DNA of 63,296 nt, filler included, from Choristocarpus tenellus KU-1152 (GCA_964200185.2; 9 parts of 9 records of this genome joined end to end with filler, not necessarily neighbours in it), one strand, 5' to 3'; numbered from the whole stretch's first letter, positions 841-9,040 are shown. A program made the numbers and translations. The notes: generated by a model from the sequence alone, not told the origin.

Positions 841-861
841 TCTCGTTTACTTTGATTCTGA

Positions 862-1039
862 GACCCAAAATACCTGGAAGGGGGGGGGGGTCTACACCGG
901 GGTGTCCATTTGGGCCATAACCAGGAAAAGTGCACTTAGATTATTCGTCCGACGTATGCCACCAAATCACACAAAAATCGCGACGTGGAAAAAATGGCCC
1001 CAAATAGACAGCTGCCACCCCACCCAGATACTTTGAGTC
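862..1039. mobile_element. MITE family A (TIR GGCTCAAAGTATCT + G-tract)
   Basis: gacccaaaatacctggaaggggg...cccacccagatactttgagtc; internal inverted GTCCATTTGGG/CCCAAATAGAC; flanks ctga/ctgt. Confidence 0.85.
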
Positions 1040-1513: not shown

Positions 1514-2750
1514 GGGAAGGACCCCAAGAATCTGACAGTCCCCTCCTTGCCCATCTCCCTGGTGTCTCCAGCTTAAAACGCATTACACGTTTTGAGAGAG
1601 CAGCTTGTGTAGTGACAGACACTACATGTCGAAAGCAGGATTTGCAGGTCCTTTCCTCCTGTAACCTCCCACCCCTCTCCCCCCTACTGCATGTGTAGCC
1701 AACTCATCCAGAAAACGTTCTGCTTACTTACTGGCCCGATCAAACCTTTCCACCGCGAGGACCAAGTTTGATACGTGTTCTCTAAACCTTGTTAAACCTT
1801 CTTCTTGATTTGTTATATGAGAGAGGCATTAAATATGCTGAAATAAGGTATTCCATTATAGTCATAATGTTAGCAACCATTAATGTTGGTCTAGTATGAT
1901 CAAAATCGTATAAACCGTTACTTCTTCAAGTAATAATTTGTCGTTATCTTTCGAGTTTATATACGTGAACTACTGCTGAAAGAACTGCGATGATAACGGG
2001 TAATAACATGAATAGTGAAGATGGTATTATAAATAGTGTTAATTTTAGGAAATGACCCAATTCTGCTTCTTTATCAAATGAATCATACTGAGTAATTGTG
2101 CTATCCATACTAGGCTAGTTAGAACCAATGTTAACAAAAGAACCCTCGTAGTGGGTGCGTTTTCCTCGCCTCAGCTTTGGTCGCACCTACACCATTGCTG
2201 GTGAATGAGTGGGGCAGATGGGAGGCTGCTTGCACTTCCGCAAATGTAACGTCCAGGATGATATTATCCCGGTAGGGAGCTGATCCAGCGTCTGCAAGTG
2301 CCCCAGCATGAAAGACCACATTCATGCTGAAATTCCGGTCCACTATAAAGTACTACCGCCCTCCATACTACAAGGGATGTCCATTCCTTGCAGAGTTGAC
2401 CTAGATGCTTGACCATTGGTGTGTGCTGGCGTGCCTCTCTCCCTACCCTAGGGCAGGTACGAGCTTGTCGGGTGTCAATATTATGCCTTCTGCACCCAGC
2501 ACCTGTTGGATAGGATCTCTTCCCTCCCTAGGGATCTCTTGTTGGCAGTGAGTATAAACTCTATGGTAAGGATCTGGAGTGCTGGAACTAGGGGTTATGT
2601 GGAGGCCCATACCCCTTGTCCACACTGGCTCCGTTGGTGGGCTAGGGCTAGCGAAGAAGTTTCCCTCCCTTCTTCTGCATCGTCTGGTTGGTAGGCTGGG
2701 CAATTGCTTCTGGAAAGAGTCGTTCCTGATCCTCTTCAGGAAGTGGATGT
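1514..2750 (-). mobile_element. CRE-like non-LTR retrotransposon 3' fragment (zinc knuckle + RLE), interrupted at 1761-2133
   Basis: Minus-strand peptides NIDTRQARTCPRVGREARQHTPMVKHLG, MNVVFHAGALADA..IILDVTFAEVQAASHL..GVGATKAEARK and QAALSKRVMRFKL; collinear with the copies at 5890-6850 and 21520-22263. Confidence 0.8.
1761..2133 (-). pseudogene. lptF: Bacterial LptF/LptG (YjgP/YjgQ) LPS-export permease N-terminal fragment, Rickettsiaceae-like, decayed
   Basis: With two frameshifts reads LTLVLTSLVWIAQLLSMIH/FDKEAELGHFLKLTLFIIPSSLFMLLPVIIAVLSAVVHVYKLER*RQIIT*RSNGLYDFDHTRPTLMVANIMTIMEYLISAYLMPLSYNK/EGLTRFREHVSNL; TM pattern and motifs of LptF/G TM1-3; intronless and AT-rich relative to flanks. 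Confidence 0.7.
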
Positions 2751-3988
2751 TTTTATGTTCATTGGACACTTGTATTTTTATTATTATACCCTCTGACATT
2801 TATAAGATGTGTCAGACACTTGTATAATGCAACATACTTGAGTACACCTTCTCTCGAACCATCTATAGTGTGTTCTGATTTGGTATCTTCTATCTAAAAC
2901 ACTATCATATGTAAATACGATCATATGTAGTATGTATAATATTATATTTCGCAAGACATTGTCAATGTTAGCCTATGTTTGATCACATATTTTATTCTTT
3001 GATTAGTTGTCAATTAATACTATATCACACTTTAAATTTTCTACAATAACAGAATACTAAGACAATTTACTCTATATTGTAGATCAAGAGAAATCACCAT
3101 AATACACGACTACTTTTTAGAAGTATGTAAGTATTTTGTTCTGAGTTTGTTTGTTTTGCCAATACATATACTATTTATGAACTACAAGAATGTTTGGGAA
3201 AATACCTTGGGTGTCTGTTCATTTCATTGTATCGGATCATTAAATGTCAATTGATATCGACACGAACAGAATACTATCTATTTCAAATCATGAACAGAAA
3301 TTAGATTGTTTCATTATTGGTTCGAAGTAGTAACTTTTTGGTTTGGTGACGATTCTGAAATTCGGTGTACATCTACCAAGTCAAATGTACAATTACAGAA
3401 GAGTATTTGCTCAATTGTCGTGTCACTTTTGTGCTTTTGTGTGCTGAAAGGGAATATCATTTTTGCGTATATTTAGCGTATCCAATCACCAACCAATCCG
3501 ACCAATTCCACGTATCGTACCCACTCATAAACCAGTGGGAACAGTTTTTGCGTATCGTATCCGCCAACAAACCACTGCGACTAATTTCTAGTATGCCCAT
3601 TATCTGTGTATGTTGTACACTCACAAACCCCTATCCCCAACCTTCGAGCATAATCACTTTCAAATTAAAACAACAAATTTCCACTTTTCCACTCAAAAAC
3701 CAATGCGCCAATTTTCGCGGATCCACTCCCACACCAATCCTCCCAAAACGCTTCACCTCCATCCGTCGCCCTCCACATTCTTTCACAGCAATCCACATAA
3801 TTCATCCAACAACACCCCACAATTATCCACTTCCATACCTTGCTTTCGAACAATAATACACCTACCCCTCGTAAACTTGACTTTCCCTCCCCCCAACATC
3901 CCACTCGATCGTGGGCAATCAAAAGGGTGAGCGGGTGCGAAAGATCGCTCAGAATTTGCCTTGATCCTGCCCCCTTTGTTCTTCTTCC

Positions 3989-4210
3989 GAGTGATAGTAT
4001 CTTAGAGGGTATGAGTTTTGCCCTGTTTGTCCATTTTGGGGCTTGGCTTCCCATGATTTTTTTATGACCTTATCTATGAAAAGGTATGTCCGGAACAAGG
4101 ATATTGACACTTCCTAAACAAACACGACAGCCAGAAACTACATCAAAATCGCAACATTGGATTGTGGCCCCCAAGTGGACGCGGATCTACCCTCTAAGAT
4201 ACCGTGGCTC
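3989..4210. mobile_element. MITE family B (GAG...CTC termini), internally deleted
   Basis: gagtgatagtatcttagagggt...acctctaagataccgtggctc; flanks TCC/TCC. Confidence 0.85.
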
Positions 4211-5150: not shown

Positions 5151-5584
5151 GACTATTTAGAAGGACTATTGGTAGATACAACACCTATCGTCAATGGTGA
5201 GACACCTCTGTAAAATATGTAATATTCGAACGCTAACAAAACAGCAATGTCCCTTTAAAAGTGTTTCAATTCCCAGTAATGTGGTATACTGCTATGCTTC
5301 TAACTTACCTTAGGCCTACGAACGTGGGTAAGGAGCTAGGGAAGCATACCAAGAATTTGTCAGCCCCCTTCTCGCCTACCTGCCCGATATCTCTACCTTG
5401 AAACGCATGACGCGTCTCCACATAATCACTTGTGCAGTAATGGATACTATCTATCTACCTCAAACGAAACTTGGCAGCCTAGCTTCAACTACTACTACTG
5501 GGATACAATAAGTATTGATGGTAAGATACCTCCCTAAAATATGACTATATAAAACTAGCAATAAAATTGTCAGGCGTGGAAGTT

Positions 5585-5843
5585 GAGCCAAAGTATCTTA
5601 GAGGGTAGAGCCGCGTCCATTTGGGGGGTCAAAATCCAATTTGGCGATATTGATGTAATTTTGGCTATTGTGTTTGTTAGGAAGTGTAAATATCCATGTT
5701 CTGGACACACCTTTCATATCATATACATTTTGCCTACTCCAAAACATTTCTGAGTAGAAAAATGTCATGAAAAACCCCAAGAGAAGCCAAGCCCCAAATG
5801 GACAAACAGGGCAAAACTCGTACCCTCTAAGATAATTTCACTC
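5585..5843. mobile_element. MITE family B, reverse orientation
   Basis: gagccaaagtatcttagagggtag...gtaccctctaagataatttcactc. Confidence 0.9.
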
Positions 5844-5889
5844 GGTTATTATCTAGAAGCTAAAGTGCACACTTATATTGCTTCCAACC

Positions 5890-7770
5890 TAGCCCCGTAC
5901 GAAGGTGGTCAAGAAGCTAGGGAAGCATCTCAAAAATCTATCAAGCCCCCTTTACCTACCTGACAAAGTGTCTCAGACTTGAAACACATGATGCTTCTTG
6001 AAAGAGTCACTTGTGCTGTGACAGATACTATCTGTCCCAAATGAGACTTGACATCTCCTTTCCAACAATAACCCTGAGCGACCCTCTCCCCCCTACCGCA
6101 TGGGCGACCAACTCATCCAGGGAAATGTTTCTTGCTTACCAAGGCACTCAACTTTCCTCAACAAAGGTTTTAACACTGAAACTACAAGGGACAAAAGATC
6201 CCCTGTAGTGGGTGCGCTTTTGCACCTCAGGTACAGCAACAGCGACGTCATTCCTGGCGGATGAGTGGGTCAGATGACAGGCTGCCTGAACCTCTGCAAA
6301 GCATCCAGAGTAAGGTCTTTGTCCCTGTAAGGAGCTGAGTCAGCCTCCGATAATGTCCCAGCATGGAGCACCACACACTCCATGCGGAAGGTTCTGTCCC
6401 AGTCAACGTGCTGTCGTCCTCCATAGTGCAAGGGAGTCCCATTCCCCTGTAGACTTGTCCTAGACGTTTGACCATAGATGTGTGCTTGAGTATTTGCAGG
6501 TGCGGACATGTCTGGTGTCAACATTGTGCCTTCAGCACCGGACCTCCAGGCACCTGTTTTACAGGACCCCCTCTCTCCCCAGAGACCTGTTGTTGGTGAG
6601 CCTAAACTCTACAGGGAGAATATCGCGTGCTGGCTCTATGGGCTGTGTGTGGTAGTCCATGCATCGACCTGCTGTCCACGCTGGCTCTGGTGGTGGGCTA
6701 GAGCTAATTGTTAACTTTCCTTTCCCTGTTCCTCTGCATCAGCACGAAGGTTGGCCAGTTGCGTCTGGAAGGAACCAATTTAGATCCTGTTTGAAAGGGG
6801 GGTGATTTCGTGTTACACTCTCCTCGGTGTCCTGACATCATGAGCTGCCAAGGGGTGGAACTCTAGGACTAGAACGGAAGTCGTTGTACTTGCCTAATCT
6901 ACTCAGCCTCGACCAAAGTCCCTGCAAAGTCCTCCGAAGGGAATCCTGGTGAGAGATAGGTGTGTATCGATTGTCCTAGAGCCTGGTATGTGGGACTCGC
7001 ACAAATGATATGGGTAGAAGCCTCTCCATAGGGTTATTGTTGCCTGGCTAGTAGGGTAGGGAGAAATCGCACTATTGATCCAACTAAAGCTGCATGGTGG
7101 AGATGTCCCATGGAGGATAGGCTTAGCCCACCTCAACTTGTTGGTATCTGTGCCTGCACTTGGTGGTCTGCTTCAAGGGGAAGAGACGCATTTCAAATCC
7201 CCCATCAAAGAACTCAGTGACCCTAGCTGAGCTTGGTAACTCCATTGTATTCTCCAGATTCCACAAAGAGGTGTCGTCAGCTTGTCCCATGGCGAAGTGT
7301 GCAAGGTGGAAGGGAATGATTTTCATTAAACAACCGAAGAGGGAAGGGAGGGACCATCAGTTGAGGAGCCAGCAACTTGTTTATGGCTCAAAGTATCTGG
7401 GGGGGGTGGTGGCGACTGTCCATTTGGGGTCAATTTTTTCATGTTGCAATTTTTGGGTGATTTGGTAGCGTACATCGGATGGATAATGTAAATGCACTAT
7501 CCTAATTTTGGTCCAAATTGAGACCCTTGTGTAGACCCCCCCCAAAAAAAATATATATATTTGGGTCTTATCCTCCATCTCACTCAGGTGCATAGCCAGT
7601 ATTCATCACGGAGAGCTCTCGATCATCCCACCATGTGGACTTGGTTAAGATTATCTGTCCCCGCAGGAGCTTCCCGTATGACAAAACCATTTCAGTCCAG
7701 AGCCAGGTTGATTTCTGCGGCGGCTAGGAGTTCCAGTCACAAGGGAATAGGCTGGTCGCCCTGAGTTGGT
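5890..7770 (-). mobile_element. CRE-like non-LTR retrotransposon remnant (post-RT region, CCHC knuckle, RLE, 3' end)
   Basis: HLAHFAMGQADDTSLWNLEN (shared with the ~61200 copy), RCLEVRC*RHNVDTRHVRTC knuckle, GLPCTMEDDS, RMECVVLHAGTLSEA..KDLTLD; frameshifted; contains a MITE A at 7385-7567. Confidence 0.8.
7385..7567. mobile_element. MITE family A nested in the CRE-like element
   Basis: ggctcaaagtatctggggggg...atatttgggtc with exact 4-bp TSD TTAT/TTAT. Confidence 0.9.
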
Positions 7771-7806
7771 GCAACGTAGGTCTTGCTCTTTTAATACTAT
7801 ACCCAC

Positions 7807-7932
7807 CTCATACAAGTCCGTTTTCAGATGCTCAAAAGCAGCGATAGCAGTGGACTTTATCTCGATTGTGGAGAAAGATGTATCATTCAGGAAGCTTGCA
7901 GAGAAAATCTGTTGGGGTTCAAGTGTTGAAAC
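7807..7932 (-). CDS. Candidate internal exon of an unidentified, possibly decayed gene
   Basis: attcag|VSTLEPQQIFSASFLNDTSFSTIEIKSTAIAAFEHLKTDLYE|gtgggt: 126 nt, phase 0/0, open; no family recognised. Confidence 0.3.
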
Positions 7933-8851
7933 CTGAATCGAATGAATAGTACTTGTAAGCAAAATGCATAGACTACTAGCGATGAGAAATCATGGTGTTG
8001 CAAAGCACAGATGTGTTTATTCTGTTGTAACTGAGGTCATTGATCTCTCAGTCGAGAATGATGCGATGTGAATTCAGTATTCTTGGTTGCTTAATTCAGA
8101 ATGATGTGGTGTGAATTCATTGTTCTTTAATGAGACACTCAACGAAAGAAGTCTATTCTCTGTTGAGAGGCTTGTTACCTTGCCTGACAAGGGTTTCCGC
8201 AGATGATTTTAACTCTGATAATATTTCATCCAGGTGTATAGCTGGTACACTCATTGTAGAGAGATCTTAGTGCATTGTGAGGGATCAATGTCAGTCATGA
8301 AAGAAATAATAATCAACCATAAATGTATAACTGTCATCTGCTGCTGATAAGAAGAAAGAGTGAAAGAAAAACAAACAAGAGAACAAAATTGAAACAATAT
8401 GTTATTCAACTCAAGTGACGTATACTATTCTATACTAAAGGAACGCAGAGAGACTGTTCTGTACACGGTGTTTTGATGGTAATTGATGCGGTGATGATGG
8501 ACAAGTGACAGTAACGTCCAGAACGTAACAGACCAATTAACAGTGTTGACTCGAGGAACTATATCGTATCAAGGAACAAACAGATGAGCAGCCTATGTAT
8601 TAACACCAAGGGTGGACTGGACTTGCTGGAGAGCTTTGGCTGCGGTCATACAGCAAATTGGATGAAGGGGATATCCTTGTTGTGCCTCCATACTTGACCA
8701 CTCTTCCACACAATATTTTCACACGCCCCTCAGTTAAGCAGAGAAGGAGATAGATCACGGTTACCCCCCTACACCTTGGCTATGTATGGCAGGGAGGACC
8801 CTGATGAAAGTCAAGCAGCACACACTGTTGAAGGTGTTTTCACTGTCTATA

Positions 8852-8995
8852 GACTCAAAGTATCTGGTGTATGTGCGTGGTCTACACCAGGGTGTCGATT
8901 CGGGCTCTGACCAGGAGAAGTGCACTTACATCCGAAGAATACAACCAAATCCACCCAAAAATTGCGACATAGAAAAATGGACCCCTAATGGACAG

Positions 8996-9040
<45 letters not shown>
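8852..9040. mobile_element. MITE family A with expanded poly-C end
   Basis: gactcaaagtatctgg...aatggacagc followed by ~40 C; right TIR incomplete. Confidence 0.8.

Follow-up and report, generated by a model that had tools for sequence, protein, structure and literature searches.

A decayed lptF fragment of probable Megaira-group Rickettsiaceae origin within a host repeat of Choristocarpus tenellus

The window analysed here, a stretch of 63,296 nucleotides (filler included) from the assembly of Choristocarpus tenellus KU-1152 (GCA_964200185.2), carries an AT-rich block that is very probably the dead remnant of part of a bacterial lptF gene, integrated in the nucleus and derived from an obligately intracellular member of the Megaira group of Rickettsiaceae; this reading best explains the observations as a whole. 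The relic is a further case of a known phenomenon, the transfer of symbiont DNA to the nucleus, and reveals no new mechanism and no functional gene. Read in this way, an integrated and decayed lptF is physical evidence of Megaira-group Rickettsiaceae inside the cells of this host line, and this evidence is independent of whether the sequenced culture still carries the bacterium.

An AT-rich block interrupts a host repeat

The block, 373 bp at positions 1761-2133, has a GC content of 0.316, and GC is 0.31-0.37 over 1701-2200 compared with approximately 0.50 on either side. A preliminary description of this DNA had reported an AT-rich block interrupting a repeat copy, and both the GC profile and the uninterrupted copies bear this out. 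In approximately 18 copies fetched from the assembly, the repeat runs without a break (...CGAAGG, 24 nt, then CAAAAGAACCC...); the window copy lacks the 24 nt present in these copies and has the 373 bp in their place, with no target-site duplication. The earlier estimate of some 20 nt replaced without such a duplication was therefore accurate, the replaced stretch being 24 nt. The empty insertion site is seen in paralogous copies of the repeat only, namely these ~18 copies of the same assembly.

The two sides of the block, at 1562-1727 and 2134-2718, match a second copy within the window (5968-6139 and 6191-6773) with 67-70% identity, and the 24 nt at ~6168-6191 of that copy are the counterpart of the stretch replaced by the block. 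Outside the window, the flanks have over 1000 candidate matches in the assembly, with identities of 76-88%. A first look returned 2480 candidates for 1400-1760, with the scored copies 82-88% identical, and 1162 for 2134-2720 (scored copies 76-80% identical).

Judging by its sequence, the repeat appears to be retroelement-like. Its copies are truncated at one end, and four longer copies share a conserved box ending in YLDDTSIS, the sole retroelement-like sign among the coding features; a decayed box of the YLDD type lies near 7850 in the second window copy. A Pfam search of ten plus four ORFs from the repeat found no domain of any family, and so no reverse transcriptase or endonuclease, even at E <= 10, and the label "CRE-like" given to the repeat in the preliminary description is unsupported. 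CRE elements are non-LTR retrotransposons that insert specifically into spliced-leader genes; copies of the window repeat occur on many contigs. A MITE-like short repeat in the window (Table 1) is separate from the lptF relic; it flanks an lptF piece on another contig (C2540) and occupies the same 24-nt repeat site on a further one (C25404).

Table 1 Features of the window and lptF pieces on other contigs
Feature	Position	Strand	Basis or remark
MITE-like short repeat	861-1037		More copies at 7381-7543 and 8851-9012
3' part of interrupted repeat copy	1514-1760	minus (inferred sense)	Homology to other copies begins at ~1514
Decayed lptF fragment, probably Rickettsiaceae (Megaira group)	1761-2133	minus	PF03739, TIGR04407, LptF alignments; 83% nucleotide identity to L247:148-1188
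Reading piece D, 16 aa	1763-1810	minus	Codon map, LptF alignment; final lptF-derived codons, with the host repeat next
Reading piece C, 38 aa	1812-1925	minus	Codon map, LptF alignment; frameshift 2 next
Reading piece M, 5 aa	1929-1943	minus	Between the TAA and TGA stops; aligns with the conserved ERQ-(I/L)-(V/I) of LptF
Reading piece B, 41 aa	1947-2069	minus	Codon map, LptF alignment; runs to the in-frame TAA
Reading piece A, 20 aa	2072-2131	minus	LptF residues ~20-39; codon map, LptF alignment; frameshift 1 next
Rest of the same repeat copy, 5'-truncated	2134-2800	minus	Own-genome copies, coverage profile
Second, longer repeat copy, insertion site intact	5900-7880	minus	Alignment to the interrupted copy
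lptF residues ~50-78 and 96-113	Contig C2540		87-89% nucleotide identity to donor-like gene
lptF residues 115-163, past the end of the window copy	Contig C15604		77-78% nucleotide identity
lptF residues 285-351	Contig C4351		29 bits, 41% protein identity

The block is a pseudogene fragment of lptF

The minus strand of the block reads as the preliminary description wrote it, with two frameshifts and two stops. On the best path, the frameshifts lie near 2070-2074 and 1811-1814 and the in-frame stops are TAA at 1944-1946 and TGA at 1926-1928; at the first frameshift, the nucleotide alignment has a 4-nt gap relative to donor-like genes. Joining the five reading pieces with an X at each break gives a full reading of 124 residues, which over its entire length aligns with residues 20-142 of ~358-aa LptF proteins. 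This N-terminal stretch had earlier been taken for TM1-TM3.

The HMM search proposed in the preliminary description upheld its assignment of the block to the LptF/LptG family. In a six-frame scan of the 164-Mb assembly, the Pfam profile PF03739 (LptF_LptG) scored 34 bits, above the curated cut-off of 27.9 (E = 1.1e-6), at 1755-2090 on the minus strand (profile positions 30-141 of 353), and this match within the block was the sole candidate in the whole assembly. The NCBIfam model for LptF, TIGR04407, gave the relic 25 bits. Taken singly, the stop-free pieces are too short for family matches: they had none in Pfam and only TIGR04407 in NCBIfam (E = 0.017). LptF is the permease of the LptB2FG lipopolysaccharide exporter. 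The relic is LptF rather than LptG, with LptF proteins of the order Rickettsiales scoring 30-134 bits and LptG types at most 20; in the genomes that supplied these LptG types, LptF scored 30-111 bits. Against Rickettsiaceae LptF, the full reading reached 111-134 bits and 59-71% identity over its whole length.

The relic is homologous to the N-terminal third of LptF, but it is not a gene. A full-length protein of this family has six transmembrane helices and a periplasmic domain in an open frame, whereas the relic holds residues ~20-142 only, with the two stops and two frameshifts described above. Neither an intact LptF or LptG nor a partner lptG was found in the assembly, where PF03739 matched in one place only and a full-length LptF query added three decayed pieces. 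The block is a pseudogene fragment and not a functional member of the LptF/LptG family. An organelle origin was considered and rejected: a DNA search gave no match between the block and the plastid contig (C1) or the mitochondrial contig (C71), and PF03739 had no match there.

The donor probably belonged to the Megaira group

The preliminary description had named Rickettsiaceae LptF as nearest; the contrast between order and phylum, the NCBI names of the best-matching family and a maximum-likelihood (ML) tree agree on this. Comparators were chosen with a published Rickettsia gltA primer (PMC9360493), which as a DNA pattern matched 120 stretches, 80 of them listed with names. One named match was "Rickettsiaceae bacterium H1", and its order served as the Rickettsiales sample. 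Its GTDB family (98 genomes) has neither PF03739 nor LpxC and was therefore unusable as a comparator; across the order, PF03739 was present in 344 of 401 sampled genomes.

A 47-aa piece of the relic matched 63 of these 401 Rickettsiales genomes (E <= 5e-4) versus three of 401 evenly sampled Pseudomonadota genomes; two of these three are also in the Rickettsiales sample. The best matches were concentrated in a single family of 130 genomes, whose LptF proteins appear in NCBI nr as "Rickettsiaceae bacterium", Ca. Megaira (Megaera) polyxenophila, Ca. Tisiphia and Ca. Rickettsia vulgarisii. Before the closest protein, P0088, was added, the full reading scored 58-111 bits against LptF of this family, compared with 30-63 bits against other Rickettsiales, 28.7 bits against an unclassified alphaproteobacterium, and less than 5 bits against Coxiella, Francisella and E. 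coli (strain K-12, used as an outgroup only).

P0088 (gene L247:148-1188) comes from the ENA metagenome assembly ERZ3929068 (contig NODE_1159), where ubiD is next after lptF. It was found by a word search seeded with the best Rickettsiaceae protein, a search that gave the Megaira-group clade only. It aligns with the relic at 133.6 bits, with 84 of 118 residues identical (71%), and its gene shares 83% nucleotide identity over 363-366 aligned positions. A donor in a phylum other than Pseudomonadota is unlikely because of this nucleotide identity.

The genome-by-genome sampling covered Pseudomonadota; other phyla were reached through phmmer with the 47-aa piece and through the Rickettsiaceae-seeded word search, two methods that do not rank weak matches. 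With phmmer, the 47-aa piece had no match at E <= 1e-3 among 1.84 billion representatives. A 56-aa piece matched nothing among genome and metagenome contigs in a search that needs exact 8-residue words, and the word search gave no candidate for it; ESM Atlas gave no usable lead for either piece. Searches with tblastn for other donor genes (mreB, mreC, ubiD and neighbours) found none in the window, C2540 or C15604.

The phylogeny for which the preliminary description had called nests the relic in a Megaira-group clade. A 44-row ML tree groups the relic and P0088 as sisters (support 97/82). The other members of their four-row clade (98/98) are proteins from one NCBI assembly and from two Logan assemblies. 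This clade lies inside one that is sister to the Ca. Megaira polyxenophila clade, with Tisiphia further out. An earlier 79-row tree without P0088 placed the relic within the Rickettsiaceae family clade (100/99); in an AU test on that tree, a position just outside the sampled family was not rejected (p = 0.31). Together, the alignments and trees support a donor from the Megaira group of Rickettsiaceae.

Further lptF pieces point to a longer integrant

Three further contigs of the assembly carry decayed lptF pieces (Table 1). On C2540, both pieces lie beside the MITE-like repeat and beside pieces of the repeat that flanks the block. The C15604 piece stays in one frame where the window copy has its second frameshift. 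In total, lptF material occurs in only ~4 of more than 1000 repeat copies. One of the other copies is a C-terminal piece, which argues for a longer integrant that was later scattered; the simplest history is one integrant over most of lptF, followed by scattering and decay.

Alternatively, the four loci could be separate integrations from the same or similar symbionts, and not copies of one integrant, a reading that we consider unlikely though by no means negligible. The pieces do span different parts of lptF, and none of the host pieces is closer to the window copy than to the donor-like gene: at the nucleotide level, C2540, for example, is 87-89% identical to L247 and 85-86% to the window copy. 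However, overlapping host pieces share derived bases that are absent from donor-like genes (4, 2 and 4 shared, against 4-12 private), and the C2540 pieces adjoin pieces of the block-flanking repeat. Separate events would also require that a single 1-kb gene be picked repeatedly from a genome of ~1.3 Mb, an odd coincidence.

The preliminary description presented the window copy as a genuine integration, and the genuineness stands. It is not necessarily the primary one, since the paralogues reach residue 163 and cover residues 285-351, and an older nuclear copy, as opposed to the bacterium itself, may have been the direct source of the piece in the window.

Break repair is the favoured route of insertion

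The proposed course of events begins with bacterial DNA set free in a host cell and joined into the nucleus. The original integrant would have spanned most of lptF, at least residues 20-351. It would then have decayed without selection while pieces of it were copied or moved to at least four loci, and the piece in the window would have been joined by end joining into a double-strand break in a repeat copy that was already there. End joining at such a break would account for all three features: 24 nt were lost, 373 nt were gained, and the target site was not duplicated. An insert with a small loss and no target duplication is the usual pattern of organelle-derived inserts. The lptF relic presumably has no function at present.

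The preliminary description had left the route between break repair and template switching by a reverse transcriptase. In the second case, the repeat's reverse transcriptase, at work on the element's RNA, would have jumped to a bacterial lptF transcript in the host cell and then back, so that lptF entered as RNA and the chimera arose in the course of retrotransposition. Such a capture would fit a piece that is short and internal to its gene, and the lptF pieces on C2540 likewise lie beside pieces of the same repeat. The sense of lptF and the sense of the repeat, as judged by the conserved YLDD box in the longer copies, also both correspond to the minus strand of the window, but the same orientation is expected by chance half the time. 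Known chimeras of this kind are usually 5' fusions, and a return to the template 24 nt further on is unlike them. Moreover, a longer DNA integrant existed, as the paralogues carry lptF beyond the window piece (residues 143-163 and 285-351). The small share of repeat copies with lptF material and the absence of a Pfam match to a reverse transcriptase in the repeat's ORFs also count against RNA capture. Of the two routes, end joining at a break is favoured, and template switching is improbable.

The block is continuous with host repeat DNA

An independently built Logan contig (run X1, record 4; 523 bp, depth 26.2) covers 1696-2218 with zero differences, reaching 65 nt past the left junction and 85 nt past the right. 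The comparison of depth that the preliminary description had suggested gives 26.2 for the block against 12-26 for its unique neighbours in X1, a run that may be the assembly's own data set, which would leave room for an error in the reads themselves. In a second sample of the organism (X2), 1844-2144 is present, reaching only 11 nt past the right junction, and depth is lower on the block than elsewhere (2.3-2.9 compared with ~7-8). From the repeat context and the depth, we infer that the block is located in the nucleus.

Compared with donor-like genes, the relic shows several indels besides its two stops and two frameshifts, a pattern that indicates decay without selection. These data are in line with the suggested genuine integration: one contig spans the two junctions at a depth like that of single-copy DNA, lptF has decayed, and related but diverged pieces are found among host repeats.

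A chimeric contig or read that joined host DNA to that of a contaminating bacterium is very improbable and already largely refuted. The contig is short and rich in repeats, and unmarked Megaira-group contaminant contigs do occur in algal assemblies, as in the case of a 665-bp contig of Ectocarpus sp. 12. Yet both junctions lie within one Logan contig of 523 bp that shows no difference and has a flank-like depth, and decayed paralogous pieces occur on three further contigs. A living bacterium would not keep such stops and frameshifts. Furthermore, the assembly has no intact LptF, and its bacterial-type 16S sequences are the plastid and mitochondrial genes plus mitochondrial fragments in the nucleus, with no others.

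One might suspect that AT-rich host DNA resembles a hydrophobic membrane protein by chance, given the bias of such DNA towards I, L, F, K and N and the weak or missing scores of single pieces in Pfam and NCBIfam. This can be dismissed in view of the colinear match (71% identity over 118 residues, 83% over 366 aligned nucleotides) and the genome-wide E value of the Pfam profile.

Relation to known transfers

Transfers from Wolbachia to arthropod and nematode hosts, and the nuclear inserts of mitochondrial and plastid DNA (NUMTs and NUPTs), are typically joined at repaired breaks without target-site duplication and then decay as pseudogenes. The relic resembles them as DNA of a compartment or an intracellular bacterium that lies decayed in nuclear DNA. 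It differs in its donor, a probable member of the Rickettsiaceae of protists and algae, and in the very small amount detected.

A closer parallel comes from Volvox carteri (strain EVE; Kawafune et al. 2015, PMC4324946), whose nucleus contains integrated rickettsial DNA. There, too, DNA of an algal-endosymbiont Rickettsiaceae lies in an algal nucleus as a trace of past infection, with the bacterium not necessarily present today. That insert is ~9 kb long, has four gene-like regions and is found in a green alga, whereas the relic consists of 373 bp inside a repeat and three smaller, scattered pieces of one gene. The donor of the relic also falls on a different Megaira-group branch, and its host looks like a brown alga.

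Living Megaira-type bacteria have been linked to brown algae before. A MAG of a Megaira-group bacterium was obtained from data of Nemacystus decipiens (PMC10132079), and Ca. Penulousia, or Megaera_A in GTDB, was reported with Ectocarpus sp. 12 (preprint 10.64898/2026.03.27.714854). Independently, we came upon the 665-bp Ectocarpus sp. 12 contig; its partial LptF is intact and shares a 90% cluster with a Rickettsiaceae MAG. This LptF belongs to the same wide clade as the relic, within the Megaira group but not with Ca. Megaira polyxenophila. The four-row clade of the relic is separate from the Ectocarpus-linked one, and no host is recorded for its members. Those reports concern living bacteria or their contigs, whereas the relic is integrated, decayed DNA. 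According to the same 2026 preprint (10.64898/2026.03.27.714854), professional intracellular bacteria in ochrophyte algae amount to two clear cases plus inferences from sequence data. We found no report of integrated Megaira-type DNA in the nucleus of a brown alga or other ochrophyte in a search that covered the full-text literature incompletely, so that this absence weighs little.

The preliminary description saw in the block the footprint of a past or present intracellular symbiont, and a decayed Megaira-group lptF that is continuous with host repeat on both sides fits this view. The relic could serve as a marker in related species and could help to date the association. It also warns that Rickettsiaceae-like matches in algal assemblies are not all contamination, and it provides a small, clean example of foreign DNA caught at a probable break in a repeat. 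A bolder reading, to which we give only a slim chance, is that the relic is one of many: the ancestors of the host would have had a long Megaira-group endosymbiosis, fragments would be common to related species, and at least this copy would have been captured as RNA by the reverse transcriptase of a retroelement. If this were true, the association could be dated and bacterial transcripts would reach the retrotransposition machinery of the host.

Organelle sequences in the assembly

The organelle contigs yielded some observations in their own right. Contig C1 carries two inverted bacterial-type rRNA operons, which constitute the plastid inverted repeat. The mitochondrial contig, C71, holds rns, rnl, tRNAs and a permuted mitochondrial 5S rRNA (RF02547, 87.6 bits). 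The RF02547 model draws on mitochondria of brown algae and perhaps of a few other stramenopiles (PMC4267664), and the organelle rRNA features therefore point to a brown alga as the probable host. The assembly also contains mitochondrial inserts in the nucleus (NUMTs).

Read depth across the lptF relic

The two Logan sequencing samples of this organism were compared for depth on the lptF relic and its surroundings. In X2, word depth over window positions 1801-2200 was 2.3-2.9 on the block vs about 7-8 on its unique flanks, whereas in X1 the depth on the block equals that on the flanks. The lower X2 depth could reflect AT bias, polymorphism inside the block, or a block that some haplotypes carry and others lack.

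Repeats and other sequences around the lptF pieces

Several further features were recorded in the window and elsewhere in the assembly (see table). One, a MITE-like repeat, is short (~170-190 bp) and has inverted ends (GGCTCAAAGTATCTGGG ... CCCAGATACTTTGAGCC). The abundant host repeat on contig C25404 carries it within the 24 nt whose place is taken by the lptF block in the window; on C2540, which carries further diverged lptF pieces, it immediately precedes one of them. The window also holds extremely abundant repeats, whose word depths in the Logan contigs sum to 1e5-5e5; one of these recurs at the end of C15604, ~600 bp from the lptF piece of that contig. Directly after the interrupted copy of the host repeat comes a second AT-rich stretch (GC 0.25-0.33), which occurs nowhere else in the assembly, contains no long ORF, and did not match the plastid or mitochondrial contigs.

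Nuclear copies of the mitochondrial small-subunit rRNA were detected at two loci, so uptake of organelle DNA does occur in this genome. One copy is recent, with 97% identity to the mitochondrial gene, and the other is old, with about 69%.

Features recorded in the window and in the Choristocarpus tenellus assembly (G000)
Feature	Location	Locus
MITE-like repeat	window 861-1037
MITE-like repeat	window 7381-7543
MITE-like repeat	window 8851-9012
MITE-like repeat	G000:C25404, about 740-950	L027
Extremely abundant repeat	window 4000-4200
Extremely abundant repeat	window 5400-6000
AT-rich stretch	window about 2820-3385
Nuclear mitochondrial small-subunit rRNA	G000:C13979:600-978	L035
Nuclear mitochondrial small-subunit rRNA	G000:C3948:7515-8301	L037

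Rickettsiaceae lptF in public data

The genome entitled "Rickettsiaceae bacterium H1" (G001, L097) bears this family name despite belonging to a GTDB family in which 0 of 98 genomes matched PF03739 (LptF/LptG) or LpxC. The whole family is therefore without lipopolysaccharide genes, and it behaves like Anaplasmataceae.

Megaira-group lptF was also found under an algal label. A 665-bp contig (L246; GCA_964200275.2, CAXNAL020074322.1) in the publicly available assembly of Ectocarpus sp. 12 AP-2014 is annotated as algal protein CAN0602660.1 and actually contains an intact partial LptF. Since this LptF shares a 90% cluster with a Rickettsiaceae MAG protein, the contig probably comes from a symbiont or contaminant and was deposited under the alga's name. 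Within the relic's four-row clade, intact lptF-ubiD contigs were recovered for P0096, on a 3962-bp contig of a very large NCBI assembly (GCA_024449895.1), and for P0095, in two Logan sequencing runs (SRR29999183 and DRR496536). The hosts behind these data could hint at which organisms the donor line naturally inhabits.
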